From Macrostomum lignano (lineage: Eukaryota): DNA of 64,000 bases. The stretch's first letter is position 1. Each line of letters starts with the position of its first letter. This document shows, piece by piece, positions 3,697-41,130 of this stretch. The position numbers were made by a program, and so were the translations under genes. The stretch covers positions 62,001 through 126,000 of the forward strand of contig NIVC01002533.1 of the NCBI GenBank assembly GCA_002269645.1. Reading direction: 5' to 3'. Below the pieces are notes generated by a model. The model saw only the letters and a program-made list of their open reading frames with translations. It did no database searches and was not told the DNA's origin.

Positions 3697-3962
<266 letters not shown>

Positions 3963-3991
3963 TCACTAAAGCCATGGAGACAGGCACTCAC

Positions 3992-4255
3992 CGGTTGCTC
4001 TTTGCGAGCTGTGTTGTGAGAATTCGGAACTAAAACTGTAAAGTTGTGTCTGTAGCTTCTCCGCTCCAAAAAAAGCCAATGCGGTCTTTGAAAGTTGAAG
4101 TCCACCTGAGCCTGAGACCGATCCGAGCTGAGGCGCTCCAAGAAGCCCCTTCTGCATCTCTTATAGAAAAGCTCGAAACGAAGAAAAGCAGAAAAGAAGG
4201 CTGGCAGAGAGCTAAACTTGCAAGCAGATGGAGAACAATAGCGAGAGCTCAGCAT
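3992..4255 (-). CDS. Possible first exon of the ankyrin gene (coding or 5' UTR)
   Basis: Donor CCG|gtgagt at 3991, phase 0 and in frame with the 3522-3656 exon; ATG at 4255. No recognisable domain. Confidence 0.3.
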
Positions 4256-9528: not shown

Positions 9529-10487
9529 TGAGGGTCATCCCAAAAGTTTCAGCAAATGCCTATTAAATTTCAACAAACGAGTGTCAGAACAATGAACATG
9601 TCAAAAACCTTCAAAATAACTTCCGTTGACTTGAATTGTGCGCTCCCAGCAGCCAGGCAACTTCTGAATGCCATCAGCAGCGCTGGATTCACACAAATCT
9701 TTTGCAATGCGGCCGACCTCGCTGAACAGGTCATCCAAGCAATGGAAACGACGTCCTTGGAACTGGTTCTTAAGCTTTGGAAAAAGGTCGAAATCGCAGG
9801 GACTGAGGTCTAGGGAGTAAGGAGGATGAGGCAGCACCTCCCACTGGTAGTCCCGCAGTAGGTCCTGCACAATGTGGGCTGTGTGCAAACTGGCATTGTC
9901 GTGCAGAAGGAGTGGACCAAGTTCCAGGGTCTGTGGCCGCTTTTTGCGCAAGGCCACCTGAAGATGGTGAATAATGAAGCTCGACGAGGGGATTCCAGAC
10001 AGCTCAGCCATTTCTTCGCATGTCCAACGGCGATTGATGTTCAGCAGCCCTTGGATCAACTCGATGTTCAACTCTGTGCAAGCTTCTTTTGGCCTTCCTT
10101 GTCCTCGACATCATCCTTGACATCAGAGCGGCCATTCTTGAATTGACTGTACCAGTTGTACAAGGCTGGCTGCCTCACATTTGGCCCATGGGCCTGCAGC
10201 AACTGACTGTGAATTTGAGCTGCAGGGACACCACAAAGACATTCAGTTTTAATGTATGAATGCTGCTCCAAGTTTGATGGAAATTCCATTTTATCGTTGT
10301 CGGCCAATGTTTGATTTAGTATCTCACAAAATGTTCTTTATAAAACAGAATTTTGCAGCTAGAATGCTAAAAACTTACTCAGACACCCGAAATATGCTCA
10401 TCTTTTGTGTGGTATAAGTGCTGTAGTCCTAAAAGTTGTCTATGGCACAAAATCATTCGATTGCTGAAACTTTTGGGATGACCCTCG
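9529..10487 (-). mobile_element. Mariner (Tc1/mariner, irritans-like TIR) transposon, internally deleted, non-autonomous
   Basis: 27-bp TIRs (t/c)gagggtcatcccaaaagtttcagcaa at 9529-9555 and 10461-10487, each flanked by TA. Transposase remnants include the N-terminal HTH and HDNA...HPPYSLDLSPCDF motifs. Confidence 0.95.
9601..10307 (-). pseudogene. Mariner transposase pseudogene (frameshift near 10070, central deletion)
   Basis: ORFs 10068-10307 and 9601-10071 are in different frames. The WVPHEL linker and the first catalytic Asp region are missing (junction ELSGIPSSS/FIIHHLQ). Confidence 0.9.
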
Positions 10488-10962: not shown

Positions 10963-11068
10963 CATACATGCGCAACAGTCGGCCAAGTCAGCCGATCTGG
11001 CTGACTGATTTGGCAGCCAACTAAGGAAGTCGCAAAAATGCCCACCTAAAAAATACTAAAGTAGTAGT
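10963..11068 (-). mobile_element. Truncated, decayed copy of one end of the 13406-13702 TIR element
   Basis: catacatgcgcaacagtcggcc...gtcgcaaaaatgccca aligns to the reverse complement of 13621-13702 with 9 differences in 82 bp. Confidence 0.85.
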
Positions 11069-13405
11069 TTATATGAATTTAAACTTAAATTATTGATTAC
11101 TAGGCCTAAAAAGTTGAGTTAATGCATGTTTTTATAATATAACTAAATGGAATTTCATCAAATAAGATTATCCAAAATTTAAAAAAGCCTACCTGTTCAA
11201 CAAAATATGTAATGATTTTGTTAGGTAAATAAAAAGTGTTATAATTTATTAATTAATATACTTTTAAGATTATTTTTTTTATTTAGACATCCTAAAATAG
11301 CCTGGCACCAAAAAGCAAAATTTGGTACCAAAATGTAGGGCACTAAAAGGGAGAGATATTATAGCTCTCTAATTATAACTTTAAGTCTTTAGAAGTCTTT
11401 ATATATAAATTAACTTATATTATTATAAAAATTAGCTTTACAAGTTATTGCGGCAAGCTATACTAGTATTAGGCTATACAACATTTAACCTAGGCTGAAA
11501 TGCAGCAGACATAATAACCATGCATTAGCTATATGTGCATGTAGATATTGACTATCTAGATAATCCATTAAAAAGAAAGTGGCACATTATGTATTAGAAT
11601 AAACTATAAAGTTTCGGAAGATGATTTGTTACACTTTTATATTTATATGCTTACAATGCTTATTATAACAAAGTATATATATATATTACTTTGTTATAAT
11701 AAGCATTGTCAAATAAAAGTTAAAGAAATAACTAGAAGTTTGATTAGCAAAAAATTATATACTTAATAATAAAATTTATTTATAATCCTCAGAATGCATA
11801 TTGACTTATACTAAAAAAGCTATATGCCATATATGTCAGGGACCTCAATATACTCTAGGCCTATGATCTATAATTACATTGTATTATATACTATATACAC
11901 ATTGACTATAGTAACTGATTAGTGCCTTGAACAGGTGCTTATAAAACAATGCCTCAAGGGTATTATGTAAAATTGTAAATGGTAATTGCAGGTCTCCAAG
12001 TCTAAGCTTACCTTGGAAGTGGCCATTATTGGAATAGCCTTCAACTTATAGGTTAGCATTGTCTTAAATTGCCAAATGCAATAAAGCAACCTTTACCTAG
12101 ACTATCATGACAATGTCTTCTAAGTCAATGACTAGGATGCTTAGATATTTGAATTGATTAAATAAAGCATAAGGCAATGATATTCTAGAAAATAGTAGAA
12201 TGTAAGTGGCATGCTAGCATATAATAACTTTGTGTAGCTTATAGTTAATATTTAAAACCTTAAAAACTTCTTCTTAACTAGCTATCTAGCTAGCTGCATA
12301 GCTTTGGGGCTCCAGCAAATTAGTGCCAAGTTGTTGGTATAGACAAGTAAATCAGATTAACACTTGAAAAAAAGGAGCTATAGCAAGGCATTATTTTATA
12401 GCTTTCTTTGCTATGCAAAGCTAAGCCAAATAATGTAGTCAATCTGGATCTCTGTGACAACAAATAGAAATAAGGAGATGTCATTATTTACAACACTAGA
12501 AGTGATAGCAAATTCAGGTTTGTGGCTATGGTTAGTTTGGATAGAAGCATTGGATAAACTATAGAGGTCTATGATTGCCTGGACTATCTTAATAGCTAAA
12601 GAACTCTGGCATGCTATTGAACATTGCTCTAGGCATGCAGTTGCACAAGTTAAATTTTATCATGGGTACATAGCTGTCTATTGCACAAAAAAGAGCATTT
12701 TTTATTTTTATTTTGCCTTTCTACATAAGCTACTGCTGCTATGTAGTATGTCTGATAGTGCTACAGTTAGTATTATGGGCTCTTAGCTCTTGCAAGTCTT
12801 GCTGAAATTGAAAAACCTGATATCATTATCCTTGGCACCCACATTCATCAGGATATTATTCTCACAAGTCAATGTTGTAGCAATAGCTTCATTTTCAACT
12901 AGCCCAATATTCTCCTTAGATGTTGATTCATATTTATTCTTAGACTTGCTTGTAACTTCAAGGCATTTTGAAGATATTGCTGTTATTTTCTTCACAAAGT
13001 CCCTGATAGTTGGATTAGTTGACTTCCTCCAGTCAGATAGGATTTTGACATTCATAGATTCAGGAATTTCACAATGTGAAACATGCTGTTCTTCTCTATC
13101 ATCGATTCAACTAGTGCAATAGTTAGAATTAGATAGTGTATAGTCTAGTAAAACTTTATTTGAAATCATTTCCCACAAAAAATGTGTGCAAGGGAAACAA
13201 TAATAAACTATAACAGAATCAGTTGCAATGCTAGATCTATAGCTCTACTTGTCTTTGCTTTTGTGAGGCATTGGCTAGAGCTAGTGCTATTTTTGTACTG
13301 TGACCCTCTGATCTCGGTGACATTCAGACTTGGAGAAAGTTTCAATATAGAGATTTGAGCAGGGGATAAATATATACAATAGTAAAAGATACATACATAC
13401 TATAA

Positions 13406-13702
13406 CATACATGCGCAACCTCCAAAATTCGGTCGGCCATGCGACTTAGTTTTAACAAAAATGCGACGTAGTTTTTGGCCAAAAGTGTGACTTACATGTA
13501 AAAAACCCTAAAGCAAAATTAACGCAACTTTGGGTAAACGGCAGGAGTAACTATGACTGTCTTATTAGGTCAAAATGCCTCGTCAGCTACTTAGTACTAC
13601 TACTTTAGTATCTATTTGGGTGGGCATTTTTGCGACCTCCTTGGTTGGCCGTCAAATCGGTCGGCCGGATCGGCCGACTCGGCCGACTGTTGCGCATGTA
13701 TG
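13406..13702. mobile_element. Non-autonomous TIR element (MITE; hAT- or P-like), 297 bp
   Basis: Perfect 14-bp TIR catacatgcgcaac / gttgcgcatgtatg. 8-bp TSD tactataa at 13398-13405 and 13703-13710. Subterminal tcggtcggcc/tcggccga repeats. Confidence 0.85.
13532..13595 (+). other. 28S rRNA-derived fragment (helix 69 to R2 target region) inside the MITE; not a functional rRNA gene
   Basis: gggtaaacggcaggagtaactatgactgtcttattaggtcaaaatgcctcgtcagctacttagt versus conserved 28S GGGTAAACGGCGGGAGTAACTATGACTCTCTTAAGGTAGCCAAATGCCTCGTCATCTAATTAGT: 53/64 ungapped identity by hand. Confidence 0.85.
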
Positions 13703-13913
13703 TACTATAAAACAGTAAGACTGCTGAGTCCAGAAATATATATGCTAATATAAAGGCACATAAAATAACTGTCTCACTAAATCAAGGCACTTATCACAAC
13801 TTTAATAGCAATGATAGGGCTAAAAGAGAGGTTTTTAAAGAGCCAGGAGCCCCCACAACATTGTGTGTATATTTCATCGCATTAAACTCCATTCATGATG
13901 TCAATTATTGATC

Positions 13914-13990
13914 ATGTCAGTTCTGCAGTCATCAATTAACATTTTAATAGAGCTTGATCGCTTTCACAATATTGATTTATACCGCAGAGG
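13914..13990 (+). CDS. FAM135: FAM135 first coding exon, variant a
   Basis: MSVLQSSINILIELDRFHNIDLYRR-GG|gtaagt; 77 nt, phase 2. Confidence 0.8.
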
Positions 13991-16900
13991 GTAAGTATTT
14001 GTTTTACAATTGTTGCTATGGTTCCCTTGGTCTAGGCTAGAAGAGTTCTTGAGAGTCTAACATTCTCACAAATCTCAAAAATCCTTAACTAACCTATCTT
14101 TGACATTTCGGTAACTAAAAATACTACCAGTAGTGTAAAAGCAAATTAATGCTATTCTTTGAAACTATTACCCTACTCCAAAAAGTAATAGAAGTTTTCT
14201 AATAAGAATAGCTTGTTTCTGAAACAAAAATTGAGATTCAATGTTCATGTTAATCATTTATATTTTCCATTTCTCCCCCTTCCCTATTCACCAAATTTAA
14301 GAGTTTGCAAACTAAATAATGTCTCACTGTCATCTGAGCCTTCAATTGCTCGTTGAACTAGACAGATTTCATAATATTGATCTTTATGATCGAGGGTAAG
14401 TTCTAAAGATTTGTGTGTGCGTGCTGCTGCCCATCTGTACAGATATTTGATAGATGGCAAGTAAAACTTTGTAATAAAAAATCTTTGTTAATAAGACTGA
14501 GAATTCTCCAAAATCAGTAGCTTGGTGTTATTGAACATGTTTGATTACTTTTTATTAGTTATTATTTAATTAAAGCATTTGATTAATGAATTTATTATAC
14601 TGGCTCGGTTGTGGTAAGCTTTTTGATCTGTTTGCACTTTGTTTAAGAAATCGTTTTAAAGCTTAATTGTACCAGTCAAATTTATATTTATCAAATTTTA
14701 TAATTAAAAACTTTAATTCATCTACAAATAACAAAGTGAGGGTGCCGTTAGCCCAGTGATCTGGCTTCTAAATTGGAATCTCGGCTTGGCTCTGCTCGTG
14801 CAATTAACGGCCCAGCTTGAGGGCACGAAGAGTGTACATCCCTGACCATTAGAAAGTCAAAGGGCCGCTGTACACAAAAGTACATCAAAAGTCTATGCAC
14901 ATTTGTATCCTTTAGCAGCTTAAAGCAGTGTTATAATGTGTACTAGCTGAAAATATAAATGCAAGCTAATTTTTAGCCCCAATAACGTTCGCATATGAAT
15001 GTAACAGTGCACATTGCAAGCACAATGTCAATAGCTTTACATTCCTGTAACTCTTTGCACTGTTCAGACTGTTCTAAAAGTACTTTTTGTGGTTGCCAAG
15101 GTTTCTTTTTAAATCATCTTTTATTCCAATAAAAGTTTTTTACACTACATATCGTCAAAGAAAACTCTACTAAGCTTTAAATAAGAAAAAATAAAACATA
15201 AACCATGAAATATACACCTATTTACTTGTTTTAATTCGCGCAAATTGGTAGTTAGCTAAATAAAATCTATTTATAGCAACTATCTGATATTTTACAACCA
15301 ACCTGCAGCATAATTTACAAGTATTTTTGCGCCATTTTTGCCAGCAAAATTCCTATTATGGTATTTATAGAAGATTTGCTATAAATAGATTCTCTTAGTA
15401 TAAGAGAATATACTATAAATAGATTCTCTTAGTTAAAGGAAATTACCGCCCATGTCCCTGAGTTCGATTTCATGGTTTGTCATAAAATTTGTAGCTTCTG
15501 TGTTAACAGAAAAATCTTACCTGAGAAGATTCAGGGCTGTTGTACACTCTGTCCCGTTGAAAAATGTACTGGGACAAGAATCGCTAAAGTCATTGCAAGC
15601 ATCTTAACTGTCCACTAACTCAAGTAGACTTAAATAGAGTTTGATATTAATGCGGAATGCGATTCCAATTCATAATCTAGTGACTCAGGTGCGCTTTAGA
15701 CGCAACTCAGTAATCCTACAGCGACTCTGGCACGCCTCAGATGCGACTAAATGGTCACAGAGTCGTTTGAGATTCGCAAGACAATAAAATGCCTCAAATT
15801 GACTCTTAGGCGTCAATTGACTTTTGGCGCCTTGTACCGTGGCATCTCGTTGTTTAGAGTCAGTCAGATCAACTAGAGTCACTTGTTTTCTATTTTACCT
15901 GTGTTTCCTGCAACGACTCTACTCTAAATCAATTCTGGGACGCTTCTTAGCCTTGGTACCGTTTTATCTGGTGTGTGAGCGCTTGCGTCTGCTCAGGGGT
16001 CAGTTAAATGGGCAGGATTGTTGGTCCCCTTGTCTGGCTGCGGATCAAATGTCTTAATATGTCAGAAAATCATAATGATATTATAATGATTAGTGATTAA
16101 TTGAACACAAATTGTAGAACTTGATTGTAGTCTTCTAGAGAGAATCGAGTGATTTTAGCCAGGGAATTAATAATAATAATAATAATAATAATCGATTACA
16201 CCTGTCCCAATTGGGCCAGGTATGCAACCGACAGCTCAGCCGCAGCTATTGCGCAGCGCAACTGAAGGCTGCGTACGGCTGTTCAGTGCAAGGACTAGGG
16301 GGTCGCCACACACCCTCAATTACCCCAGCTAATGCTGGCACCCATTTTTACAGCTGGGTGAACTGAAGCAATGCAGAGTTAAGTGTCTTGCTCAAGGACA
16401 CAAATTGTTCCAGTGGTATCGGGAATCGAACCCTCGACCTTCAAGTCGTGAGTCCGACGCTCTAACCACTAGGCTGCAACCCCCTTAACTAGGCAAACAA
16501 ATATGATGACTATTGTATCAATCAGTTAAAAAACCGATTCATTTAAAACCTGTGTCCGCACAGATACTATGAGATCCGTTGCGGTATCAAGCAGAACGGT
16601 CAGAGCCCGCGGTTGACCGGCCCAATCAGCTGCCGTCTGTATCAATCCACTCCGTTGAGCAATAGCGCCTGCTCCGAGTACGGCGTCGAAGCTGCCTATG
16701 TTGACGCCACCGCCTGCGGCGCCGCCGGCGGCGCCAGCGTCTCGGCTTCTACATTGTCTTTGGCATCGACAGCGTCCGCTGCTGCTGGGAATTCATCGAC
16801 TGCAGCAGCTGGACAGTCAGGTGCTGCGGCTTCGGCTTCGTCTTCTTCTTCTAATAGCAGCTTTCGTTGCGCCGCTGTGTCTAAGCTTGTGCAGGTGAGA

Positions 16901-17933
16901 TTGCAAGTTCGATTAACGAAATTTTTGTTATCCCCAGAATATTATTTGTAGAATATTTAAAAAAATATGATGGTAGTAAAATTTTTATATCGGAATTAAC
17001 TATAGCAAATTTTTTTAAATCGATATAAATAATCAAAAAATCTTTGATCAAAAAATCTTTAATTTTTCAGTGATAAATGTAGATATCAAAATGTTAAAAT
17101 AAAAATTATCAATATTTAAATAGTTTTATCTGAGAATTATCGATATTTTAAATATTTAATTGACTTATCAATATGTTTTATATTTAAACGAGAACTATCG
17201 ATATCTTAATTGTTTAAATGAGAATTATCGATACCTTAAGTATTTAAATGAGAATTATCGATATATTAAATGTTAAAATGAGAATTATCGAAATCTTAAG
17301 TATTACTATGAGAATTATCGATATCCCTAATATTTTAGTCGAAATTCAATATCAAGATCTATCTTTATAATTAATGTCATCGAGTTAGCAGTGTCGATAT
17401 ACCTTATTCCGCACGTGGCAATGAGTTAATAATATTGTTATTAAGTTATGAATAACCATATTACTACAAAAAAAATGAAAAATTTTATCTTCCGCACAAA
17501 GGTGATGTACAAAGACCAGCTCAGCCCGCTAGAGGACGCCTTCCTATTTCGCGTCGACTGTCTTGTTGACCCCGAGTGTCCTCTGGACAGCCTGTCCGCC
17601 CTGTCCGTCAGCTTGCTGGTTGAGCTGTGGTTCACTGATGAGGAGAATAGCGACACCATTCGGCCCGCTCTGAAGCTGGTCTCCAGCCGGGAGCTGCGAG
17701 TCACCATGGATCCCACTAGGGGATTTCACTGCTATGTGCCCTGTATATTCGATTATTACTACCTCAGCTGCGTTGAAGTGATGGTGCACGCCTGCCTCAC
17801 CGGCTTCGGCACTGTTAAACTCAGGTGAGTGCGTGGCTGTTGTGTCCGTGTGTGTCTGTCTGTCTGTGTCTGTCTGTCTGTCTGTCTGTCTGTTGTCTGT
17901 GTGTCTGTGTGTCTGTGTCTGTCTATGCCTGTC

Positions 17934-17970
<37 letters not shown>

Positions 17971-20900
17971 AACTCTGTGTATTATACATTTATTCTTCCT
18001 CTTTCACTCTTGCTGACTATTTTTGAATTGCTTAGCTGTTACCCCTAAAATTAGAGATTGATCTAGATACTCGTAATACTTTGTATTTTTCGTTTTGCCA
18101 TTTTTGTTAGTATCAATACAGGTTATATAGTATAGTGTGATTATGTGTATTGACCGATTACTTGACTAGTATATTTTATCAGTTTGCTAGTATTAAATTT
18201 CGATATGGTTACAAAATAACGACTCCCTTCTACTTGCAGTAGTAGCTTTTATAGCTTTTATTGCCGTAAACCACTGTCTAGTGTGTTATTTGAACTGAGA
18301 AGAAAATGTAGTCTTTCTGTAGTAATAAAAAATCGAAAGTACTGTGTGCCTTCTGGTAACTGCAAGGGTCTTATTGGCTTTGTGTTTATGTTATAATACC
18401 TATTTATAATTTAGCCAGTTATGCTCATTTTGAACCAGTTTCATATTACATTCCAAGATCGTGACTAAGGGAAATAATTAATTGGGTTTCCTTCAGCTAA
18501 GCTTCAGTTGGAAATATGCTGCATATGTGTATAGACTCTTCACTGTGTTACTTGAACTATTTAAATAATGCCTTCTACTATAATCTCAGTCAGTTAATTA
18601 ATGCGCATGTGCAAGTGAAAGTATAGAAAGCATTGTCTATTTTGCCTTCTTTTTTTCTCTAGTAAGAGAGTGGCAATGCAAACTTGTAGGTCTTTAAGCA
18701 CAGTTTGTTCATTTAATTTGGTTGAAAAAACCCGGCAGGAAGCATTTAGCAACAAAGCTAAGACTAAAACAGACTTGCTAAGACTTAAAGTGTAAGGAGA
18801 GAAAGGTTTTTAGAAATTGCATAGAGCGTTACAATGTACATGGTGATGAAGTGTACAATGCTGGTACCAATCTAGCTTGTGTGCTGTTGAATTAGTTTTT
18901 GCCTTAGTATTCAAAGCCAACACTGGTTCTAGGCCAAGGAGGCCTAAATGTTTAATCTGGATTTCTAGACGTCAGAATTACGTTTTGTTAATCTATATTG
19001 TTTCATTTTTAATTTATGATACTTTGTGTTTTTAGGCCTAGGGCTTAAACTTAGCTCTAAAACACACTAGTGCAAATAATACACAGTTTGTGAATTGTCC
19101 AGTTTGTGAATTGTACAGTTTGTAAATTGTCCAGTTTGTGAATTGTCCAGTTTGTGAACTGCCAAGTTTGTAAATTGTCCAGTTTGTGAATTGTCCAGTC
19201 TGTGAATTGTCTAGTTTGTGAATTGTCCAGTTTGTGAACTGCCAAGTTTGTAAATTGTCCAGTTTGTGAAGTGTCCAGTTTGTGAATTGTCAAGTTTGTG
19301 AATTGTCAAGTTTGTGAATTGTCTAGTTTGTGAAAGCGCCCCCCAACCCTAAATAACTGGATGCTTTCTAATCCAAGTAGTTTTATTTCTAAATAGATCT
19401 CCATGAAACTTAGGGGGTGAGGGAGTGAGAGAGAGAATGAGGCCAGAGAGGGTTTAGGGGGAGGTTAGGGGCAGTGTGGGGGGTGGGGGGTTCCATCTCC
19501 AGCTTTAATTCGAGTCAGATTTTTTTAAAGCTGGTTTGGTTCTGGTTGGTTGGTTCTGGCCTGGCCTTGCCTGGTGAGGGTGGGGGGGAGGGTAAGTGAG
19601 GCCAAGAGAAGCGAAACCGCGTGCTGTTTTCTTTAGCAAATTTTCTTTTACTTCTTTCTACCTCTCTTCTCTCTCCGTGTGTGTGTGCAGTCAGTTGTTC
19701 ATTGAATTCAATTCTATTATGCGCAAGATTCTTGTGTATGTAATCAAGCCCAAGACTTGGCTGACTGAACACTCGAAAACCCCTGCAGGGGCTCGCACAG
19801 CGGTACCAACCTGGCTAAGCAGGCTTCGGCCGAAAATTTCAGCTCTTTAACTTCGTTGAATGTGCAGAATCCTGAGGATAGCTTGTCAGCTTTGCAAGAT
19901 ATTTTGGTTGGAAAGAATCAGGTCAGTATTATATTTGTGCTTTTATTGGGCCTGCGATTAACAGCTTTTATGACCAACTGTTAATGCATTTTTATACTCG
20001 TAGATTCTTAGCTTGTTAATTTAATTAATTATGTCTTAACTGTTTCTTAGGATTCTCTTCACAAATCCTCAGTTGCTGGGCCACCAGCCTCTCAGATCCT
20101 CAGTTGCAGGGCCAGTCTCCCAGATCCTCAGTTGCAGGGCCAGTCTCCCAGATCCTCAGTTGCAGGGCCAGTCTCCCAGATCCTCAGTTGCAGGGCCAGC
20201 CTCCCAGATCCTCAGTTGCAGGGCCAGTCTCCCAGATCCTCAGTTGCAGGGCCAGCCCCCCAGAACCTCAGTTGCAGGGACACAGCCTCCCAGATCCTCA
20301 GTTGCAGGGCCAGTCTCCCAGATCCTCAGTTGCTGAGCCAGCCCCCCAGATCCTCAGTTGCAGGGACACAGCCTCCCAGATCTTCAGTTGCAGGGACACA
20401 GCCTCCCAGATCCTCAGTTGCAGGGCCAGTCTCCCAGATCCTCAGTTGCAGGGCCAGCCTCCCAGATCCTCAGTTGCAGGGCCAGCCTCCCAGATCCTCA
20501 GTTTCTGGGCCAGCCTCCCAGATCGTCAGTTGATGGACCAGCCTCCCAGATCCTCCTAGAGCCAATCCATGACTATGCTATCCAACACCAATTAATTCAG
20601 TCCCGTTCCTTTCCATCCCCGAACTTCCAGTCAGTCCAGCAGCGCCGCAAGCTTGTGCTAACAGTGCACAACAATGTCTGCCATTTACTACTATCAGCCT
20701 ACGAGTCTTTGCAGGCCAGCCTTAAACAGGCCATCGACCTGCTGCCGCCAATGCAGCAGATGCAACTGGGTAAGTCTGCAATCGGTAACATTCATTATGA
20801 GTTTTAGTAGTTTTTTTACTTTATAAAAAGTTGGTTATCGAGGACTGTTGACTATAAAACTGTGGCATATTTTTATTAATATATAAATGCCATAAATATC

Positions 20901-23900
20901 ATATATCATATTCATCTCCCACTCCCCTATCCAATTAACCCACTTGTAACTGCCGGTAACAGATAAAAACATACGCAAACTTGTCAAACGAGAGAGTAAG
21001 TTATTTATATAACAATAAATGTATAACATGTAGTATGTACACGTAATCTATTTATTAAATATTTGAAGCAGTTTCTTTTTATAATTGTGTGCACACCAGT
21101 TTTTGCTCTTCACTTCTTCTATTGCAATATTACAGAAAATAAGCCGATCATTAAATTATGCTTTGATTAGTTAGTTTCACAATAATAAGTATAATAACGT
21201 GTGTCCCAGAAAGCTTGCCTTCAATATTAATAGTAATAATAATTATCGTACGGCTGTTCAGTCCAAGGACTGGGGGGCCGGGGGTCGCCCCCACACAGCC
21301 TCAATTACCCCAGCTAATTTGCTGGCACCCATTTTACAGCTGAGTGAACTGAAAGTTAGGTGTCCGAATAGCCGAATAGGAGTCAGTTGAAATGATATGA
21401 GGCTTTTCTCAGATAAAACTTGCACTTTTTAATAGAGCATCGCATTTTCTTTCCTCCACCGCTTCCTATATTATACATGTATATATATATTGAAGATCTA
21501 ATCGTCTTGTCTAGTTTGCCTTTACTAGGTGTAGTTCTCTGTTTTAATTGATAAGCATAAATTGTGTTAATGCATCTCTTAACTCTGTATTGTTTGACTG
21601 ATAGTTTAGAATATATTTCAGTTTTTACTGTGATTATTTTTATTACTAACATCTAACAAATTGCTTACGATGTATTGTAGTTCTACTATTAAGTTTATTT
21701 TTTGAGCATGGTTATTATTGTTTCAATATCTACAGATATTTACTGTATCTGTTCTGTGTAGTTGACTTACCGTATAATTAAATGCTTTTTTCAATGATTT
21801 TTATTATCTACAAGGTTAGTAACTAAAGTCATAATATCATGCTTTAGTGTTGTTAATTAAATCATTATCTGATATCATTGTGCTAGATCTAGGATCTAGG
21901 AGCTAGAAAATATGGAATCTGGGATCAAGGATCTGAAATCTGGGATTTAGGATCAGGGATCTAGGATTTGGGATCTAGGATCTACATGTAGGATCTGGGA
22001 TCTAGGATCTACAATCTGGGATTTATGATCTGGGATCTAGGAATTTGGGATCTGGGATCTAGGATTTTGGGATCTGGGATCTAGGATTTCGGGATCTGGG
22101 ATCTGGGACCTGTTATCTGTTATCTAGGATATGGGATGTAGGATCTGGGATCTAGAATCTAGGATCTGACATCTAGGATCTGGGATCTGAGATCTAGGAT
22201 CTGGGATCTGGGATCTAGGATCTGGGATCTGGGATCTAGGATCTGGGATCTAGGATCTGGGATCTAGGATCTGGGATCTAGGATCTGGGATCTGGGATCT
22301 AGGATCTTAAACAAATAGACGTGAGATCTTGTGTCAGCATGACTAAAAATCTGTTAAAAGTACAATATGATTATTGAATAATTAAAAATCTTATATCAAG
22401 TTTTTGCGCCTACAAGTACTATTTGTGCAAAAGTACACACCTAGTTATCTCTGTTCCTCATCGCAATCACACAGACCAGGTGGACTGCTCTTCCCGTCTG
22501 GCCAGCCTATCAGAGCAGATTCACTCTTGTCAAGGCGACGAAGAGCTACTCCGATTGGCTACTGGTCACATGACCGCCCTAGTAACGGATCTCCAGTTGC
22601 TATGGGAACGGTTCATATCAACGGCCTGTTTACAAGAGTCGGTCATCGACCAGTGCGCCAGGCAGTACCACGCCATGCGGGTTCGCCGTTTCGCCGAAGG
22701 CTACTTTCGCACTGAGAAGCTGGTTGGCGATCTATTCAGACTGCAGGACGCGTCTCCTTATGAGAGTCTGGCCCAGCTAATCCGCACTTCGGCTTATTAT
22801 TCTCAGCTAGCTCAGCTGCCTCTGCACTGTCCGGAATTGGACGGCGATCCGGCCACTATGCCTCTGATATTTGAGGACGTCTATCCGCCGCATTCCGGAC
22901 AACCGGAACCGGATCCGTTGGCTGTGCCCGCGCCGCAGGCGGCCGAAACCGGGTCGCCTCAGCAGCCGCGACTCGAGGTAAGAAAGTGTCCATTGTTTCT
23001 AATTAGAGGCTAATTGTAGCTTGAGATGCCATTTCTGTAGCTTGAAATGCCGTTTTTGTAACTTTAGATGCCATTTTTTGTAGCTTGAGATGCCGTTTTT
23101 GTAGCTTTAGATGCCATTTCTGTAGCTTGAGATGCCATTTCTGTAGCTTGAGATGCCATTTCTGTAGCTTAAGATGCCATTTCTGTAGCTTGAGATGCCT
23201 TTTTTGTAGCTTAAGATGTCATTTCTGTAGCTCGAGATGCCATTTCTGTAGCTTGAGATGCCATTTCTGTAGCTTGAGATGCCTTTTTTGTAGCTTGAGA
23301 TGCCATTTCTGTAGCTAGAAATGCCTTTTTTTGTAGCTTGAGATGCCATTTCTGTAGCTTGCGATGCCATTTCTGTAGCTTAAGATGCCATTTCTGTAGC
23401 TTGAGATGCCATTTTTATAGCTTAAGATGCCATTTCTGTAGCTTGAGATGCCATTTCTGTAGCTTGAGATGCCATTTCTGTAGCTTGAGATGCCATTTCT
23501 GTAGCTTGAGATGCCATTTCTGTAGCTTGAGATGCCATTTCTGTAGCTTGAAATGCCGTTTTTGTAGCTTTAGATGCCATTTTTTGTAGCTTGAGATGCC
23601 ATTTCTGTAGCTTGAAATGCCGTTTTTGTAGCTTTAGATGCCATTTTTTGTAGCTTGAGATGCCGTTTTTGTAGCTTTAGATGCCATTTCTGTAGCTTGA
23701 GATGCCATTTCTGTAGCTTGAGATGCCATTTCTGTAGCTTGCGATGCCATTTCTGTAGCTTAAGATGCCATTTCTGTAGCTTGAGATGCCATTTCTGTAG
23801 CTTGAGATGCCATTTCTGTAGCTTGAGATGCCATTTCTGTAGCTTGAGATGCCATTTCTGTAGCTTAAGATGCCATTTCTGTAGCTTGAAATGCTTTTTT

Positions 23901-26900
23901 TGTAGCTTGAGATGCCGTTTCTGTAGCTTGAGATGCCATTTTTGTAGCTAAATTGAAGTGTCATTTTTGCAGATATGATTTCATGTAATTCGGGGATTCT
24001 ATTCAAACACAAGCGTTTCAATATTTAAATCAGTATTTAATTGTGAATGCCTAAACTTTACCGGAGTGTAATTAAATATGATGTGCCGATGATATATAAA
24101 AGCACATAATTATTTAGTTTCATAATCTTGTAATCCCCCCAAACCCCCCAGCAGACACAATCAGCCACGGATGGCAGTTCGAGTTCACCATCTCAAAATG
24201 CCTCCGCCGGCGCCTCATCAATGTCGACATCGACTCCAGCTCAGCAGCAGCGTCAGAATCTACCACCTCCGCCGCCGCCTCCTCGCATCACCTGCATGCC
24301 TGCTCAGCGGGCCCTGAGTTCGAATCTGCGCAGCCTATCAGGCCACGAAGCTCCGCCTGAGCAAGCCAACTCTGAGCACGCTCAGCTCATTGGCTATAGG
24401 AAATTAGTTAATGGCGATTCTTCCACTACTGCGGCTAATTCAACTGGGGTTAGCGTTGCTCACGATTCTCTAACCGGGCCCGGTTCTAACAATGCCAGCT
24501 TATTGACTGTCAGCGGCGGTGCTGGCAGCGGCCGGGGCCTGGGCACGCTTAGCACGGCCTGCAGTTTGCCAGACTTGCACCAAGTAGCTTCTGGATGCGG
24601 GAGCGGAGAACTGTCCGGTACAGGCTGTCTGGCTGATCAGGATCGAGACGGTGATGACGATGACGCAGACGTGATTGTTAGCGGCGGCAGAGGCGGAGCA
24701 GCAGCTCCGGGTTCTACTAGAAGTTCGGGTAGAGAAGAATCCGTGATGGAGGCGTTGTACGGATTCCAACGTCAGCAACAACGGGTTAGCATTTGTTGTC
24801 ATCATTTGATTTATTACTACTTCTGTTTCTATTCTACTATTAGTAGCATACAATTCTGAGTTATTTTTATTCCATTTTTATATTTGGGATTTCAATCAAA
24901 TTTTCTAGAATGCCATTTCCAAGTTTTGAAATGCCATTTCCAAGTTTTGAAATGCCATATTTAAGTTTCGAAATGCCATTTTCAAGTTTCGAAATGCCAT
25001 TTTCAAGTTTCGAAATGCCATTTTCAAGTTTCGAAATGTCATTTCCAGGTTTCGAAATGCCATTTTCAAGTTTAGAAATGCCATTTTCAAGTTTTGAAAT
25101 GTCATTTCCAGGTTTCGAAATGCCATTTTCAAGTTTAGAAATGCCATTTTCAAGTTTAGAAATGCCATTTTCAAGTTTCGAAATGCCATTTTCAAGTTTC
25201 GAAATGCCATTTCCAAGTTTCGGAATGCCATTTTCACCAGGTTTCGAAATGCCATTTCCAAATTTTGGAATACATGTATCATTTCTAAGTTTCAGAATGT
25301 CATTTCCAAGTTTCAGAATGCCATTTTAAAGTTTCGGAATGCCATTTTCAAGTTTCGAAATGCCATTTCAAGTTTCGGAATGTCATTTCCATGATTTGGA
25401 ATGCCATTGCCAAGTTTCGAAATGCCATTTTCAAGTTTCACAATGCCATTTACCAAAAATACGTGCGATTAATTTCATAGAAAATCATGCTTCTTCAAAT
25501 CATTATTCTCGCTAGGGCCTCGATGTGCCACCACCGCCGCCGCCGCCAGCTGCAGCAGCAGGCAGTTTGCACAGCCATCAGCAGTCAGTGCACCTGAGCC
25601 ATGCCAAATCAATGTCAGACCTGAAGCTCAGCAAGCTGGTCAGCGCATTCTCAGAGACTACACTGGCCAATGTGCAACGCAAAGAGGCAATGAAACGAGA
25701 GATGGCGCTGACTCAGTTGGATTCTATCCTGCATCTGTACAGCGATTTCCGACTGTCAGCTTTGGCTTCTACAGATCCGCCATTTCGAGACCTGCCCGAC
25801 CTGGGTAGCGGAGGCGGCTCCTCGGGCAGGCACCTGGTTGTTTGCGCGCACGGACTCGAAGGCAACTCGGGCGATCTTCGATTAGTTCGAGTCTACCTGA
25901 CCATGGCTCTGCCTAATGAACGATTTGACTTTCTAATGTCCGACCGTAATCAATTGGACACTTATGCTGATATTAAACAGATGAGGAACAATCTAGTTGA
26001 GGAGCTGCTAGCGCACCTGAGCGCTGCGTCTCGTCAGCCGACTCATATTAGCTTCATCGGCCACTCGCTTGGTACTATTATAATACGGGCTGCTGTGTCA
26101 GATTCCAGGCTGGCTCATTTGCGTTCGAAATTTCACACCTTCCTAAGCCTGAGCGGGCCTCATCTTGGCGCTCTGTATAACACTTCTAATCTAGTTAATG
26201 CTGGCATGTGGTTTATACAGAAGATGAAGAAGTCTGGCTCGATTCTGCAACTCAAATTGAAAGACAATTCCGATCAGAGACAGACCTATCTGTACGAGTT
26301 GAGTAGCGCATCGGGTTTGGACTCGTTTGCTAATGTACTGCTGGTCAGCTCGCCACAGGACCGATATGTGCCCTACCACAGCTCCCGGGTTGAGCTGGCT
26401 TCCAGGTGAGGGCTTGTTGCTTAGTGTTTTCAATTCTCACCGGCTCTTCTCGCTAATCCCATCGGTTCTCTGCTAATCTGCACACTAATCCCATTGATTA
26501 TCTACTAATTCCAACGGTTCTCAACTTATCTCACACCAAAATAATCGGTTCTCTACTAAAATGTACACTAATCCACTTAGTTCTGTACTAATCTGCACAC
26601 TAATCCCATCGATTAGGGGGCCGTAGCCCAGAGGTAGCGCAGGTGCTCTGGTGTGCCAGCGACCCAGGCTCGATTCCAAGTGCAGTCAAATTAATTTGGG
26701 GCTAAATTCGAATCTCGGCTTGGCTCTGCTCGTGCAATTAACGGCCTTGAGAGCCAACCCCCCAAGGCGCAGTGAAGTGTACATGCCTAACGACAATACG
26801 AGTATAAAGTTAGGGCCGCTGTACACTCCTGTGTGAGTGTGTGCCTGCATACGTATCGGCGCGCTTGTATGCCTGCTCAGGGGAGTCGGCGGAATGGGCA

Positions 26901-27841
26901 GTAATGCCTCTCGCCGGTTGTGTGCCTATGTCGCTTTAAGTGCGCAAGGGTGCACACAACCCCCTGCCTCTAATAAATAAAAATCCCATCGATTATGTAC
27001 TTTATGTACTAATCTGCGCACTAATCCCATCGATTCTGTACTAATCTGCGCACTAATCCCATCGATTCTGTACTAATCTGCGCACTAATCCAATCGATTC
27101 TGTACTAATCTGCGCACTAATCCCATCAATTCTGTACTAATCTGCACACTAATCCCATTGATTATCTACTAATTCCATCGATTATCTACTAATCCCATCG
27201 GTTCTCTACTAATCTGCACACTAATCCCATTGATCGAGAACCGATGGGATTAGTAGATAATCAATGGGATTAGTGTGCAGACTAGTAGAGAACCGATGGG
27301 ATTAGTAGATAATCGATGGAATTAGTGTGCAGACTAGTAGAGAACCGATGGGATTAGTAGATAATGTTACTAGTCTGCACACTAATCCACTCAATTCTGT
27401 ACTAATTTGCACACTAATCTCTTCCATTCTCTACTAATCTGTGTACTAATCTAGTGGCTAATACCATCGATTCTGTACTCGCTAGTTGTCTTGCCATTTC
27501 TCTCGATGCCTTATTCGCTAATTTCCTCACTAATCCAGTCGCAAATAATTCTATCCCAAAGTCACACCAAAGCGAATAATCCCTCACTAATTTGCAGAGC
27601 CCTAAAAGACACGGGCCAAATGTCCGCAGTGTACATGGAGATGGTGTCAAACCTGTTGCAGCGCCTATCCAAGGTGCTAACTGTTCGCTACGATGTTCAT
27701 CATTGCTTTCCAAGCAGTACCAACTCTCTAATTGGCAGGGCCGCTCATATCGCCGTGCTGGATAGCGAAGTATTTCTTGACAAGTTCATCTCCGTATCGG
27801 CTGCTAAGTACTTCTCAACTGTGGGGCTTGACAGTCGCTGA
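13914..27841 (+). CDS. FAM135: FAM135 family protein (N-terminal conserved domain + C-terminal putative lipase/serine hydrolase), spliced gene
   Basis: Exons: 13914-13990 or 14319-14395, 16564-16894, 17502-17824, 19789-19921, 20601-20769, 22475-22977, 24155-24784, 25516-26405, 27598-27841, all with consistent phases. Motifs ELDRFHNIDLYRRGYYEIR, MRVRRFAEGYF, VCAHGLEGNSGDLR, SFIGHSLG (GxSxG) and IGRAAHIAVLDSE match FAM135A/B. Confidence 0.9.
14319..14395 (+). CDS. FAM135: FAM135 first coding exon, variant b
   Basis: MSHCHLSLQLLVELDRFHNIDLYDR-GG|gtaagt; 77 nt, phase 2; polypyrimidine tract and AG upstream at 14300-14301. Confidence 0.8.
14739..14875 (+). mobile_element. SINE family A, 5' partial copy
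   Basis: Shares aatctcggcttggctctgctcgtgcaattaacggcc and gggccgctgtacac with the copies at 26616 and 58141. Confidence 0.75.
16168..16484 (-). mobile_element. SINE family B (tRNA-derived), full length, (TTA)n tail
   Basis: Minus strand begins ggggttgcagcctagtggttagagcg (A box)...ggttcgattccc (B box); body gtgtccttgagcaagacactt and cacccagctgtaaaatgggtgcc; ends in a (tta)n run. Confidence 0.85.
16564..16894 (+). CDS. FAM135: FAM135 exon 2
   Basis: cacag|A TAC TAT GAG ... GTG CAG|gtgaga; YYEIRCG...AVSKLVQ. Confidence 0.85.
17125..17345. repeat. Degenerate ~30-bp AT-rich minisatellite
   Basis: aaatgagaattatcgata...ttaa repeated about 7 times. Confidence 0.7.
17502..17824 (+). CDS. FAM135: FAM135 exon 3
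   Basis: aaag|GTG ATG TAC ... CTC AG|gtgagt; VMYKDQ...RGFHCYVPCIFDYYYLSCVEVMVHA. Confidence 0.9.
17841..17970. repeat. (TGTC)n microsatellite
   Basis: Direct reading. Confidence 0.9.
19085..19333. repeat. 16-bp minisatellite (TGTGAATTGTCCAGTT)n
   Basis: About 15 units. Confidence 0.9.
19789..19921 (+). CDS. FAM135: FAM135 exon 4
   Basis: cctgcag|G GGC ... AAT CAG|gtcagt; phase 2 to phase 0; ...SLSALQDILVGKNQ. Confidence 0.7.
20066..20555. repeat. 28-bp minisatellite (CCCAGATCCTCAGTTGCAGGGCCAGCCT)n
   Basis: About 17 units; source of the overlapping Q/S/P-rich ORFs. Confidence 0.95.
20601..20769 (+). CDS. FAM135: FAM135 exon 5 (5' boundary uncertain)
   Basis: HNNVCHLLLSAYESL matches FAM135 H-x-x-LC-x-x-LL-x-AY; donor CTG G|gtaagt. 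Phase-0 acceptors at 20600 or 20630; 20600 gives spacing closest to vertebrate FAM135. Confidence 0.75.
21247..21353 (-). mobile_element. SINE family B, internal fragment
   Basis: cgtacggctgttcagtccaaggact...tcaattaccccagcta...gctggcacccattttacagctg matches the 16.2-16.4 kb copy. Confidence 0.8.
21885..22306. repeat. (GGGATCT/AGGATCT)n simple repeat
   Basis: Direct reading. Confidence 0.9.
22475..22977 (+). CDS. FAM135: FAM135 exon 6
   Basis: cacag|AC CAG ... CTC GAG|gtaaga; MRVRRFAEGYF...LPLHCPELDGDPATMPLIFEDVY. Confidence 0.92.
23018..23949. repeat. 21-bp minisatellite (TTTCTGTAGCTTGAGATGCCA)n
   Basis: About 44 units filling the intron. Confidence 0.95.
24155..24784 (+). CDS. FAM135: FAM135 exon 7 (low-complexity linker)
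   Basis: cagcag|ACA ... CAA CGG|gttagc; phase 0/0, GC-rich, stop-free. Confidence 0.8.
24905..25452. repeat. 21-bp minisatellite (GAAATGCCATTTTCAAGTTTC)n
   Basis: About 26 units. Confidence 0.95.
25516..26405 (+). CDS. FAM135: FAM135 exon 8 (alpha/beta-hydrolase-like domain)
   Basis: gctag|GGC ... TCC AG|gtgagg; HGLEGN, GHSLG, SGPHLG, SPQDRYVPYHS. Confidence 0.95.
26440..27590. repeat. ~32-bp degenerate minisatellite (CTAATCCCATCGATTCTGTACTAATCTGCGCA) with an inserted SINE and an inverted block
   Basis: Forward units at 26440-26615 and 26982-27234; reverse-complement units at about 27235-27365; forward again afterwards. Confidence 0.85.
26616..26981 (+). mobile_element. SINE family A (tRNA-derived), full length
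   Basis: Head gggggccgtagcccagaggtag (A box)...ggctcgattcc (B box), A-rich tail; 14-bp flanking duplication aatcccatcgatta at 26602-26615 and 26982-26995. Confidence 0.85.
27598..27841 (+). CDS. FAM135: FAM135 last exon
   Basis: tttgcag|A GCC ...; VYMEMVSNLL...NSLIGRAAHIAVLDSEVFLDKF, stop TGA at 27839-27841. Confidence 0.95.
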
Positions 27842-29380: not shown

Positions 29381-30241
29381 AAACATGCCCTAACTTAAAA
29401 CCCATTCACATCCTTAAATTTATTGCTTGTTTCCAAATGACAGTAAAAGTTTGCGCACCGATAGACATATCCATAAATACTTGTTTGGCTATTTTATTTT
29501 GTTTAACTTCTTTTCTAATTTCTAACGTTGAATTTTTTACTCTGTCTTTGTGTTGTCAGTTTCTGACACTGATTGTTGATTTTTTAGAGTTTAGTTGCAA
29601 GTTTTATGCATTAAACTTAGTCTTCATTTGCTCTTTATTTTATTGTATTACCGTTTTCTTCTTTCGTCTTTGAGGTATACGCAGAAATCAATGAAATCTT
29701 TTAATCGTATAATTATGGTTTCTGTAAACCTAATTTTGTATGATTATAATCATTGCTGACCAAAAATTGTTCCTCCATTAAGAGAATCTTTCTTTTATGC
29801 AAGTAAAAATGCAATATGTACTTTGGTGGAGAAGTTTTATTTTAAAACTATTTGACCCATCTGTACTTTATGCTAAACTATTTTCGCCTCGAGAGCCAAC
29901 AACACTTGTCTGTTTTATTTATGTTTTTAGCATATTGCCTGTCCTTTGCCTATGTGCACAGAATGGCTGTCCCTTCTAAACCAATATTGTGATGTCTGCA
30001 CAATCCAATAGAATGTATTGATTTATGATCATTTATGATAAGCCGCGTTGTTTGTTAATGTTTATCCTAATTATTAAGTAAACTTGCATGCAACCCCACA
30101 GTTAAACAGTTTTTAACATCGAGTAGAGTTTCTTAGAATTCGTTAAGTTCAAATCCATCAGTTTTTATTTGTGAACATCCATCATTTCATTTATGCTAAC
30201 ATTTCGGAAGCCATATTAAATTGAATAGAAACAATCCGGTC

Positions 30242-32535
30242 ATGACTGACGACAACAAGCCAACCTGCGGACAGCGCATGAGCGCCTGCGGCCGGTTCCT
30301 CTACAACAAAGATCGAGGCACCTTTCTCGGCCGAACTCCAAAATCGTGGGCTTTAATCACCATCTTCTATTTGATTTATTACTCTTGTCTGGCTGCATTT
30401 TTTGTCGGCATGCTGAGCGTACTGCTGTTCGGCATCATTGATGACACTAAGCCGATGCTGACTGGCGAACAGTCGCTGATCAGGATGAACCCGGGTCTGG
30501 GCATGCGCCCCATGCCGGATGTTGAACGGACTCTGATTAATGTGAACGCGTCTGATCAGAAGAATCTGGACAGGCTTGTTGGTAATCTGGATCAGCTGGT
30601 TAATTCCTACTCTTCTGTGAATAAATCGCTAGAGGATCCGAATATGGAGTACGCTAACTGCAACTTGGAGGATGCTGAGGTTAGTCTGTGATTTTTTGTG
30701 TATCTTTTGCCCTAATCTACACCTGAGAATCGGCCCTTAACTACACCTGAGAATCGGCCCTTAACTACACCTGAGAATCGGCCCTAATCTACACCTGAGA
30801 ATCGGCCCTAATCTACACCTGAGAATCGGCCCTTAACTACACCTGAGAATCGGCCCTTAACTACACCTGAGAATCGGCCCTTAACTACACCTGAGAATCG
30901 GCCCTTAACTACACCTGAGAATCGGCCCTTAACTACACCTGAGAATCGGCCCTTAACTACACCTGAGAATCGGCCCTTAACTACACCTGAGAATCGGCCC
31001 TTAACTACACCTGAGAATCGGCCCTTAACTACACCTGAGAATCGGCCCTAATCTACACCTGAGAATCGGCCCTTAACTACACCTGAGAATCGGCCCTAAT
31101 CTACACCTGAGAATCGGCCCTAATCTACACCTGAGAATCGGCCCTTAACTACACCTGAGAATCGGCCCTTAACTACACCTGAGAATAGGCCCTTAACTAC
31201 ACCTGAGAATCGGCCCTTAACTACACCTGAGAATCGGCCCTTAACTACACCTGAGAATCGGCCCTTAACTACACCTGAGAATCGGCCCTAATCTACACCT
31301 GAGAATCGGCCCTTAACTACACCTGAGAATCGGCCCTAATCTACACCTGAGAATCGGCCCTTAACTACACCTGAGAATAGGCCCTTAACTACACCTGAGA
31401 ATCGGCCCTAATCTACACCTGAGAATCGGCCCTTAACTACACCTGAGAATCGGCCCTAATCTACACCTGAGAATCAGCCCTAATCTACACCTGAGAATCG
31501 GCCCTAATCTATACCTGAGAATCGGCCCTAATCTACACCTGAAAATCGGCCCTAAACTACACCTGAGAATCGTCCCTAGTCTACACGTGAGAGTCGCCCC
31601 TAAATTACACCTGAGAATCGCAACTAATCTACACCTGAAAATGGCCCCTAAGCTACACCCGAGAATCGCCCCTAAGCTATACACATGAGAATCGCCCCTA
31701 AGCTATACACATGAGAATCAGTCCTAAACTACACCTGAGAAATGCCCGCACCTAAACTATACCTGAGAAATGCCCGCACCTAAACTACACCTGAGAAATT
31801 CCCGCACCTAAACTACACCTGAGAAATGCCCGCACCTAAACTATACCTGAGAAATGCCCGCACCTGAACTACACCTGAGAAATGCCCGCACCTAAACTAT
31901 ACCTGAGAAATGCCCGCACCTAAACTACACCTGAGAAATGCCCGCACCTAAACTATACCTGAGAAATGCCCGCACCTAAACTACACCTGAGGATCGGCCC
32001 TAAACTACACCTGAGAATCTCCTCATCAACCTTATCCCCACAGGCCAACCGGGATTTCGATCCCAAGAAGAAGATCTGCCGCATCGACCCCAGTAAGCAC
32101 TGGGGCAACTGCACCTCAGCCAATAAGTTTGGCTACGAGAGCGCCACCCCGTGCGTGATAATCAAGATGAACAAGATTTATGGCTGGCTGCCGGACATCG
32201 AAGACCCGCAGCTGTCCAACCACACCCTGATGCGTTGCGAACCTGAGAATGACGGCGACAAGGCGACATTCGGCAGCGGCAGTCTGCTGTACTATCCCGG
32301 CGTGACTGTGAACGGCACCGACTATGGCTACTTTAGCAGCGCTCTGTTCCCCTATTTGAACCAGAAGGGCTACACAACTCCGACTGTTGCTGTGAGATTC
32401 CCCAACGCTCGCCGCAATGTCCTACTGATGGTGTCCTGCCGCCTGTATAATATTAAGAACTATCGCTACGACAAGATGGACCGCGACGGTATGGTCCGAT
32501 TCGAACTGCTGATTGTCAACACTGGCAGTAGATGA
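30242..32535 (+). CDS. ATP1B: Na+/K+-ATPase beta subunit, two exons (30242-30679, 32044-32535)
   Basis: FLYNKDRGTFLGRTPKSWALITIFYLIYYSCLAAFF (TM), NPGLGMRPMP, C...WGNC, YGYESATPCVIIKMNKIYGWLP, YFPY-like LFPYLNQKGY...AVRF, final RFEL. Sites GAG|gttagt and cacag|GCC, phase 0. Confidence 0.95.
30715..32016. repeat. 24-bp minisatellite (CTACACCTGAGAATCGGCCCTTAA)n grading into a 28-bp variant
   Basis: Fills almost all of the ATP1B intron; after about 31740 the unit is aaactacacctgagaaatgcccgcacct. Confidence 0.95.
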
Positions 32536-40676: not shown

Positions 40677-40714
<38 letters not shown>

Positions 40715-40911: not shown

Positions 40912-40961
<50 letters not shown>

Positions 40962-40989
40962 CCTGCCTGTCTGTCTGTCTGTCTGTCTA

Positions 40990-41032
<43 letters not shown>

Positions 41033-41087: not shown

Positions 41088-41130
<43 letters not shown>

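Follow-up and report, generated by a model that had tools for sequence, protein, structure and literature searches.

We analysed a 64,000-nt stretch of the genome of the flatworm Macrostomum lignano (positions 62,001 to 126,000 of contig NIVC01002533.1, forward strand; in the following called the window, with record coordinates equal to window coordinates plus 62000), which carries a gene of the FAM135 family with two similar first coding exons in tandem. As reconstructed, the gene occupies 13899–27841 on the plus strand, from these two exons, here called 1a and 1b, to the stop codon after ...KYFSTVGLDSR. The coding parts of exon 1a (13914–13990, plus strand; record 75914–75990; MSVLQSSINILIELDRFHNIDLYRRG) and of exon 1b (14319–14395, plus strand; record 76319–76395; MSHCHLSLQLLVELDRFHNIDLYDRG) lie on the same strand, start 405 nt apart and measure 77 nt each, from an ATG to a phase-2 donor GG/GTAAGT. 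An in-frame stop codon lies a short way 5′ of either ATG, TGA at 13896 for 1a and TAA at 14313 for 1b. The 328 nt between the exons contain no coding sequence (spacer, 13991–14318, plus strand, 30% G+C).

The common acceptor exon, exon 2, lies at 16564–16894 on the plus strand (record start 78564; ...cacag/A TAC TAT GAG). The GG of 1a or of 1b together with the A of exon 2 yields Gly26, followed by YYEIRC, and both exons therefore fit the acceptor at 16564. Exon 3 (17502–17824, plus strand) encodes the core of the DUF3657 region and is reached through an acceptor of the AAG type, used in cis. Within these limits, the translation of exons 2 and 3 equals the deposited protein from residue 27 on. 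If 1a were spliced to 1b, the spacer would be an intron; otherwise it would be an outron or the promoter region for 1b. Splicing of 1a to the AG ending at 14301 or to that ending at 14303 leads to an early stop codon (after ...RRGVCKLNNVSLSSEPSIAR or ...RRGLQTK). Because joint inclusion ends in a stop, 1a and 1b can serve only as alternatives, and a productive mRNA carries one of them. The two versions would be told apart by the N-terminal peptides SVLQSSINILIELDR and SHCHLSLQLLVELDR, the latter being that of 1b. A preliminary description of this DNA had reported the two 77-nt exons with their identical phase-2 donors at a distance of 405 bp, as well as the early stop upon splicing 1a into 1b, and we recovered every one of these details.

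The assignment to FAM135 rests on both ends of the protein. A Pfam search with the translation of exons 1, 2 and 3 found DUF3657 (PF12394, “Protein FAM135”) at residues 175–235 (E = 4.3e-18, 66 bits vs a cut-off of 27), and the putative serine esterase domain DUF676 (PF05057) is encoded at 25516–26406 of the window (E = 1.7e-49). Queries with the C-terminal part matched FAM135 proteins of many animals at 53–61% identity, and the N-termini of 76 FAM135 orthologues align without gaps to both 1a and 1b. Both exons retain E13, F17, N19, D21, L22 and G26, but Q5 is present only in 1a. The earlier proposal that this is the conserved N-terminus of FAM135 thus agrees with the two domain matches and with the orthologues. 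When 1.84 billion representative proteins were searched exhaustively with a profile, we obtained about 170 FAM135 relatives and one near-identical protein (P0121; E = 1e-145), which is PAA57085.1, “hypothetical protein BOX15_Mlig001885g6, partial”, annotated on NIVC01002533.1 itself (GCA_002269645.1, Mlig_3_7). It matches the window from 16565 on, with the last stop-free segment ending at 27838. The N-terminus, queried both as a whole and after removal of its Ala/Ser-rich stretch, gave no matches in a word-index protein search; that index listed no FAM135 match longer than 465 amino acids and missed the M. lignano proteins, which the profile search recovered. A literature search for Macrostomum together with FAM135 returned no paper.

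The lipase-like proteins of the FAM135 family, which have a C2-like domain at the N-terminus, are poorly understood. As in FAM135A and FAM135B of other animals, an N-terminal DUF3657 region is followed by a C-terminal DUF676 domain in the same order, and the first coding exon comprises the same 26 codons. Vertebrates differ in possessing two whole genes, A and B, whereas M. lignano has two first exons within one gene.

The two exons are clearly related. With one exon-1 peptide as query, tblastn found the other in the window at E = 1.8e-8, while the next-best match reached only about E = 0.5; the 64-kb window contains exactly two copies of exon 1 and no other FAM135-like segment. Exons 1a and 1b share 17 of 26 residues and 41 of 77 nucleotides (53%), and their nucleotide alignment was better than all but one of 300 shuffles. 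Their 150-nt flanks align no better than shuffled sequence, and the sequence upstream of 1a has no detectable homology to the spacer. Where both exons encode the same residue with a degenerate codon, the codons differ in 11 of 15 cases, corresponding to a proportion of synonymous differences of about 1, that is, saturation. Residues 13–23 (ELDRFHNIDLY) are identical although their codons differ at nine nucleotides, all of them synonymous, in line with the preliminary description, which had noted a core that is the same in protein and different at synonymous positions. When nine random substitutions were placed on either copy, the core peptide stayed unchanged in none of 600,000 simulations. 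We used this simulation instead of the Nei-Gojobori method, which gives two “non-synonymous” steps within the identical core, an artefact of averaging over multi-step paths (CGC/AGA, TTA/CTT).

Since synonymous sites are saturated and the flanks can no longer be aligned, the duplication must be old. Because the synonymous sites were not preserved while the protein core was, constraint acted on the protein, and it did so on both lineages. Taken together, the comparison supports the view that the first coding exon of FAM135 was duplicated in tandem long ago and that purifying selection has since acted on both copies at the protein level. That the core has not changed further indicates translation of 1b during most, if not all, of its existence as a duplicate. 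The core contains about 27 non-synonymous sites; had 1b evolved neutrally over more than ~0.1 substitutions per site, the peptide would probably differ, which limits the time that 1b could have been dead. This signature of constraint is the main argument that 1b has been translated. The preliminary description had read the pair as an old duplication, kept by purifying selection, that gives rise to two isoforms. Saturation and the unalignable flanks bear out the age, the core bears out the selection, and the frame break fits as well, whereas the two isoforms we infer from selection.

The same pair occurs elsewhere in the genome. One further copy lies on NIVC01000106.1 (1a at 518306–518382, 1b at 518711–518787) and another on the minus strand of NIVC01001182.1 (1a at 316777–316701, 1b at 316330–316254). 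Both loci, called L002 and L003 in the following, contain 1a and 1b, so the pair is present on three separate contigs. The divergence between 1a and 1b lies far above the 0–4% between the three genomic copies, which dates the exon duplication to long before the recent polyploidy of M. lignano. When the window is compared with L003, the intron segment 13991–14160 shows 27 substitutions over 170 aligned positions, with another 42 columns containing gaps, but exon 1a shows only two differences in its 77 nt (Fisher p = 0.002). The fewer changes in 1a than in the adjoining intron point to constraint on this exon.

To judge which copy resembles the ancestor, we compared both with the orthologues over the first 26 residues. 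Exon 1a scores above 1b against 74 of the 76 N-termini (mean BLOSUM62 score 68 vs 59). The whole of this difference lies in residues 1–12, the segment that had been described before as divergent. At position 5, Gln is found in 72 of 76 orthologues and in 1a, and 1b has His; altogether, 1b carries H3, C4 and H5 where 1a has V, L and Q. Both exons have the lineage-specific residues L11, D15 and R16 in common, which fits a duplication within the Macrostomum lineage. The one relative whose FAM135 locus was checked, the trematode Echinostoma caproni, has a single FAM135 exon 1 of 77 nt from ATG to GG/GTAAGT, followed by a very short intron, and its 25.5-kb contig contains no second copy of exon 1. 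The exon boundary is therefore ancestral, and the duplication is not shared with E. caproni. A weak ELNRFHN match in the E. caproni locus was rejected because it runs on into unrelated sequence. Metagenome contigs, searched for congeners with a degenerate DNA pattern for ELDRFHNIDLY, gave no match. By these comparisons, 1a is the ancestral-like exon; in our reading it is also the default one, with 1b as the diverged alternative.

To see what exon 1 contributes to the protein, we modeled the 1a and 1b isoforms with AlphaFold2, using a 29-sequence alignment. Residues 1–55 and 125–240 form a confidently predicted β-sandwich, and the Ala/Ser-rich insert at 56–124 is predicted to be disordered. Residues 4–19 constitute strand β1, with predicted local distance difference test (pLDDT) values of 90–95 in both isoforms; residues 20–25 form a turn, and the second strand begins at residue 26. 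The models of the two isoforms are indistinguishable, but because they share an alignment, this mainly indicates compatibility and not functional equivalence. In a Foldseek search against the PDB, the fold matched the C2 domains of Munc13-1 (C2B), cPLA2, CEP120 and NEDD4L, with weak E-values (3e-3 and above), a probability of 1.0 and template modelling (TM) scores of up to 0.72 on the target. On these models, exon 1 is an integral strand of a C2-like domain, not a floppy tail. The hydrophobic, inward-facing positions 8, 10, 12 and 14 are kept in both versions, and 1a and 1b differ mostly at residues 3–6. Such a pattern is usual for homologous alternative exons. What the difference might do is a matter of speculation: it could affect binding to membranes or partners, and metal binding or lipid modification at H3-C4-H5 is conceivable. 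A long-kept pair of alternative β1 strands would mark this strand as functionally tunable, and it offers an isoform-specific handle, for RNA interference or reporters, in a flatworm that is amenable to transgenesis. The whole DUF3657-containing part encoded by exons 1–3 (residues 1–240) is predicted to be C2-like, and the resulting FAM135 layout of a C2 and a lipase-like domain is reminiscent of cytosolic phospholipase A2. The disordered Ala/Ser-rich insert of ~70 residues between strands is found in M. lignano FAM135.

We next consider the evidence for the use of the two exons. The window's own gene model, PAA57085.1, is 5′-partial and opens with YYEIRC, where the first complete codon of exon 2 lies; neither 1a nor 1b is annotated in this copy, and both are intact 2.2–2.6 kb upstream of exon 2. 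That the 5′ end of this model falls exactly on the acceptor could mean that the boundary was cut at a trans-splice signal or that the aligner dropped a short first exon. The 90% cluster of PAA57085.1 holds seven other M. lignano proteins. PAA90629.1, which begins CQLLIMSVLQSS... (CQLLIM), and PAA71183.1, which begins QLLIMSVLQSS..., come from other contigs of the same assembly, and MSVLQSS... is the start of three short UniRef models from an older M. lignano assembly. These are the five available M. lignano protein models with an exon 1, and in every one of them 1a continues directly into exon 2 (...RRG/YYEIRC). RNA-seq assemblies (StringTie/TACO and de novo transcripts) underlie the Mlig_3_7 annotation, whose gene boundaries were set from trans-splicing and poly(A) evidence (PMC5730564). 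The models of this annotation are transcript-based, two of the five being of this kind, and the junction of 1a and exon 2 is therefore supported by transcripts. Of the two exons, annotation thus covers 1a alone: exon 1b is annotated in none of the three genomic copies, and the tandem pair as such has gone unannotated.

Two of these models suggest where the 1a transcript starts. The partial coding sequences of PAA90629.1 and PAA71183.1 start 15 and 12 nt 5′ of the 1a ATG, corresponding to window positions 13899 and 13902, which suggests a short 5′ untranslated region (UTR) at 13899–13913 on the plus strand. A TATA-like box, TATATTT, lies at 13868–13874 on the same strand, 46 nt 5′ of the ATG and 31–34 nt 5′ of these model ends, and all three copies have it. 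Because no AG closely precedes 13899 in the window, the 5′ end of 1a is not a splice acceptor in this copy. These features hint at a conventional start site served by a TATA-like promoter, with a leader of about 15 nt. The heptamer itself occurs 26 times on this strand of the 64 kb, about once per 2.5 kb, and taken alone is weak evidence for a promoter.

Several observations concern the sequence around this leader. Just 5′ of it (window 13891–13899; L003 about 9990–9998; L002 about 9993–10001), the three copies differ: L003 has TTCCAG/ATGTCAATT, a perfect acceptor of the YTNCAG trans-splice type, the window has TTCATG, and L002 has TGCATG, the same six bases with which the spliced leader of M. 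lignano ends (...TTGCATG). Trans-splicing of exon 1a may be confined to a single copy, or the resemblance is coincidental. Two out-of-frame ATGs at 13895 and 13898 open a frame of 13–14 codons over the 1a start codon (13895–13939); they would be upstream open reading frames (ORFs) only if transcription started further upstream than the annotated 5′ ends.

For exon 1b, a second TATATTT at 14259–14265 (plus strand), 60 nt 5′ of the ATG, is a candidate core promoter. It is kept in 3/3 copies, which is weak evidence because the intron around it is conserved to the same degree. If transcription began about 31 nt 3′ of this box, the leader would measure ~29 nt. The pyrimidine tract TTTTCCATTTCTCCCCCTTCCCTATTC (14263–14289, plus strand; 25 of 27 pyrimidines) may belong to a 3′ splice site as its polypyrimidine tract, or may lie between a TATA box and its start site. 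Two candidate 3′ acceptors are contained in the AGAG at 14300–14303 (plus strand); they would place the exon start at 14302 or 14304, 17 or 15 nt 5′ of the 1b ATG. The AG at 14302–14303 is present in all three copies, whereas that at 14300–14301 is lost in L002 (TTTAAAAG), where an AAG/ is recreated two bases later.

By what route 1b would reach an mRNA can be weighed only from these signals. The preliminary description had named alternative promoters, alternative splicing or trans-splicing, and the last deserves to be taken seriously, since spliced-leader trans-splicing does occur in M. lignano. Our leading candidate, at slightly less than even chances, is a separate transcription start for 1b, located 3′ of the second TATATTT. 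Somewhat less probable is spliced-leader trans-splicing onto the AAG or GAG acceptor 15–17 nt 5′ of the ATG. M. lignano trans-splices 30–39% of its genes (PMC5730564, PMC8629364), using a 35-nt leader that ends in ATG and an acceptor motif YTNCAG (PMC8629364). Addition of the leader at 14302 or 14304 would create an upstream ORF of only six or four codons before the 1b ATG, and the AAG acceptor of exon 3 favours the feasibility of an AAG/ at 1b. Against this route count the AAG/ and GAG/ endings of the acceptors, the loss of the first AG in L002, and the cis donor of 1a upstream of the 1b acceptors, an arrangement that normally favours cis-splicing. A variant in which cis-splicing of the 1a donor to exon 2 competes with leader trans-splicing onto 1b in the same pre-mRNA seems rather improbable. 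Were it true, trans-splicing would be the switch that decides which of the two N-terminal variants of the C2-like domain is made, and the 1b version with His3-Cys4-His5 would have a different membrane, metal or lipid-modification behaviour.

Taking the evidence together, we consider it likely that 1a and 1b, the products of an old duplication, are two alternative start exons of M. lignano FAM135, and equally likely that two isoforms are expressed from them. In this scheme, each exon would supply its own ATG, 26 codons and a phase-2 donor joining the acceptor of exon 2, giving two proteins that would differ only in the first 26 residues, that is, in β1 and the turn of the N-terminal C2-like β-sandwich that precedes the DUF676 lipase-like domain. 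The 1a version would be transcribed from the TATA-like promoter, its 5′ UTR measuring about 15 nt. The continued use of 1b we infer, as we do its route. Four points weigh against that use: the 1b peptide (MSHCHL) occurs in no deposited M. lignano protein that we found, all five exon-1 models using 1a; 1b has lost the near-invariant Q5; its acceptors, TTTAAG/ and TAAGAG/, have no C at −3 and do not fit YTNCAG; and although 1b is intact and identical in 3/3 genomic copies, the introns around it are also 99–100% identical, so that conservation among the copies carries no weight and the three copies have no power to detect present-day constraint on 1b. A search for the exact full-length 1b isoform in a 15-billion-protein collection found nothing, but the 1a control was also absent, which makes this result uninformative.

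The same four points speak for a rival reading in which 1b is a relic, a long functional alternative that is now unused, with only 1a joined to exon 2. We hold this to be unlikely, if the most serious of the competing explanations. The ATG, open frame, phase, GTAAGT donor and 11-residue core of 1b are all intact, and with total divergence saturated and the core nevertheless unchanged, a loss of function would have to be very recent. Moreover, transcript assemblers and GenBank filtering (PMC5730564) often drop minor 5′ isoforms. Far less probable is a single mRNA containing 1a, 1b and exon 2, in which the 1a frame would be an upstream ORF of 31–44 codons and the protein would arise by re-initiation at the 1b ATG. 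With the acceptor at 14303, the 1a frame does end in the TAA at 14317–14319, overlapping the 1b ATG at 14319–14321 as TAATG. However, the transcript-based models join 1a directly to exon 2 and yield a full-length protein, and if 1a served just as an upstream ORF, nothing would oblige it to retain the β1 sequence of FAM135 or to remain closer to the orthologues than 1b. A resemblance by chance, or a segment falsely duplicated in the assembly, is refuted: the match at E = 1.8e-8 coincides with equal length, phase and donor, the pair lies on three separate contigs, and a nucleotide identity of only 53% is incompatible with a collapsed or duplicated assembly segment.

Alternative start exons thus remain our preferred reading, and as a phenomenon they represent textbook tandem exon duplication, opening no new question. 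Mutually exclusive homologous exons that arose by tandem exon duplication are well documented (PMC9013439, PMC9741552, PMC8373072; human survey PMC5740500). Exons 1a and 1b resemble them in being adjacent, of equal length and phase, homologous in protein and encoding the same structural element, as well as in their age, their strong protein constraint and the frameshift with premature stop upon joint inclusion. They differ in being first coding exons with their own ATG, and the choice may therefore be made at the transcription start or by trans-splicing and not through competition of internal splice sites. They differ also in that transcript-based models support the junction to exon 2 for 1a alone. 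The arrangement also resembles alternative first exons with alternative promoters (PMC8260223, PMC1475603), in that two 5′ exons, each with an ATG and a donor, fit a common exon 2 and that a TATATTT, as putative promoter, precedes each of them. Such first exons, however, are typically unrelated in sequence, whereas 1a and 1b are paralogous and encode the same β-strand. With M. lignano genes subject to spliced-leader trans-splicing (PMC8629364, PMC5730564), 1b shares a preceding pyrimidine tract and AGs 15–17 nt 5′ of the ATG, but its AAG/ and GAG/ are not YTNCAG, and the cis donor of 1a would lie upstream if transcription started at 1a.

Some further features were noted around the two exons. 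The TAATG at 14313–14321 joins the 1b ATG by a one-base overlap to the stop codon of the 1a frame (acceptor 14303) or of the frame of the leader ATG (acceptor 14301). Overlaps of stop and start codons of the TAATG type occur at some termination/re-initiation sites. A 26-nt inverted repeat (73% complementary) at 14180–14205 and 14528–14553 brackets 1b and could loop the exon out, but is probably a chance match in AT-rich DNA. The window copy is a mosaic: up to about 14160 it hardly differs from L002 and is ~16% diverged from L003 (plus indels), whereas between about 14238 and 16829 it matches L003 at 100% and diverges from L002 by 1–4%. The switch thus falls between 1a and 1b (about 14160–14240); either homeologous copies have recombined or undergone gene conversion, or the assembly is chimeric. 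About 200 bp 5′ of the 1a ATG, a 315-bp insertion with inverted ends (13399–13713; ...ACATACATGCGCAAC ... GTTGCGCATGTATGT...) occurs in the window copy alone; L002 and L003 lack it. Sequences related to it (88%) are found at 10963–11068 of the window and at 7394–7499 of L002 and 4757–5048 of L003. The insertion looks like a small non-autonomous DNA transposon in the promoter region of 1a.

In the FAM135 introns and elsewhere in the window, stretches resembling tRNA-derived sequences or short interspersed nuclear elements were recognized by eye (14738–14830, 16300–16480, 26627–26833 and 58219–58473); ARAGORN predicted no tRNA in the window. Long mini- and microsatellite arrays occupy introns and the regions between genes (3741–4030, 20029–20560, 23046–23948, 24860–25470, 40213–41300, 45244–46613 and 48119–49169) and give rise to long spurious stop-free frames. 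Downstream of FAM135 and on the same strand follow a gene for a Na/K-ATPase β-subunit (30200–32532; 309 amino acids, two large coding blocks) and a gene for a large EH-domain protein of ~1750 amino acids (34232–36489). The order of FAM135, ATPase and EH-domain genes is also found in L003, and L002 shows the ATPase gene only.

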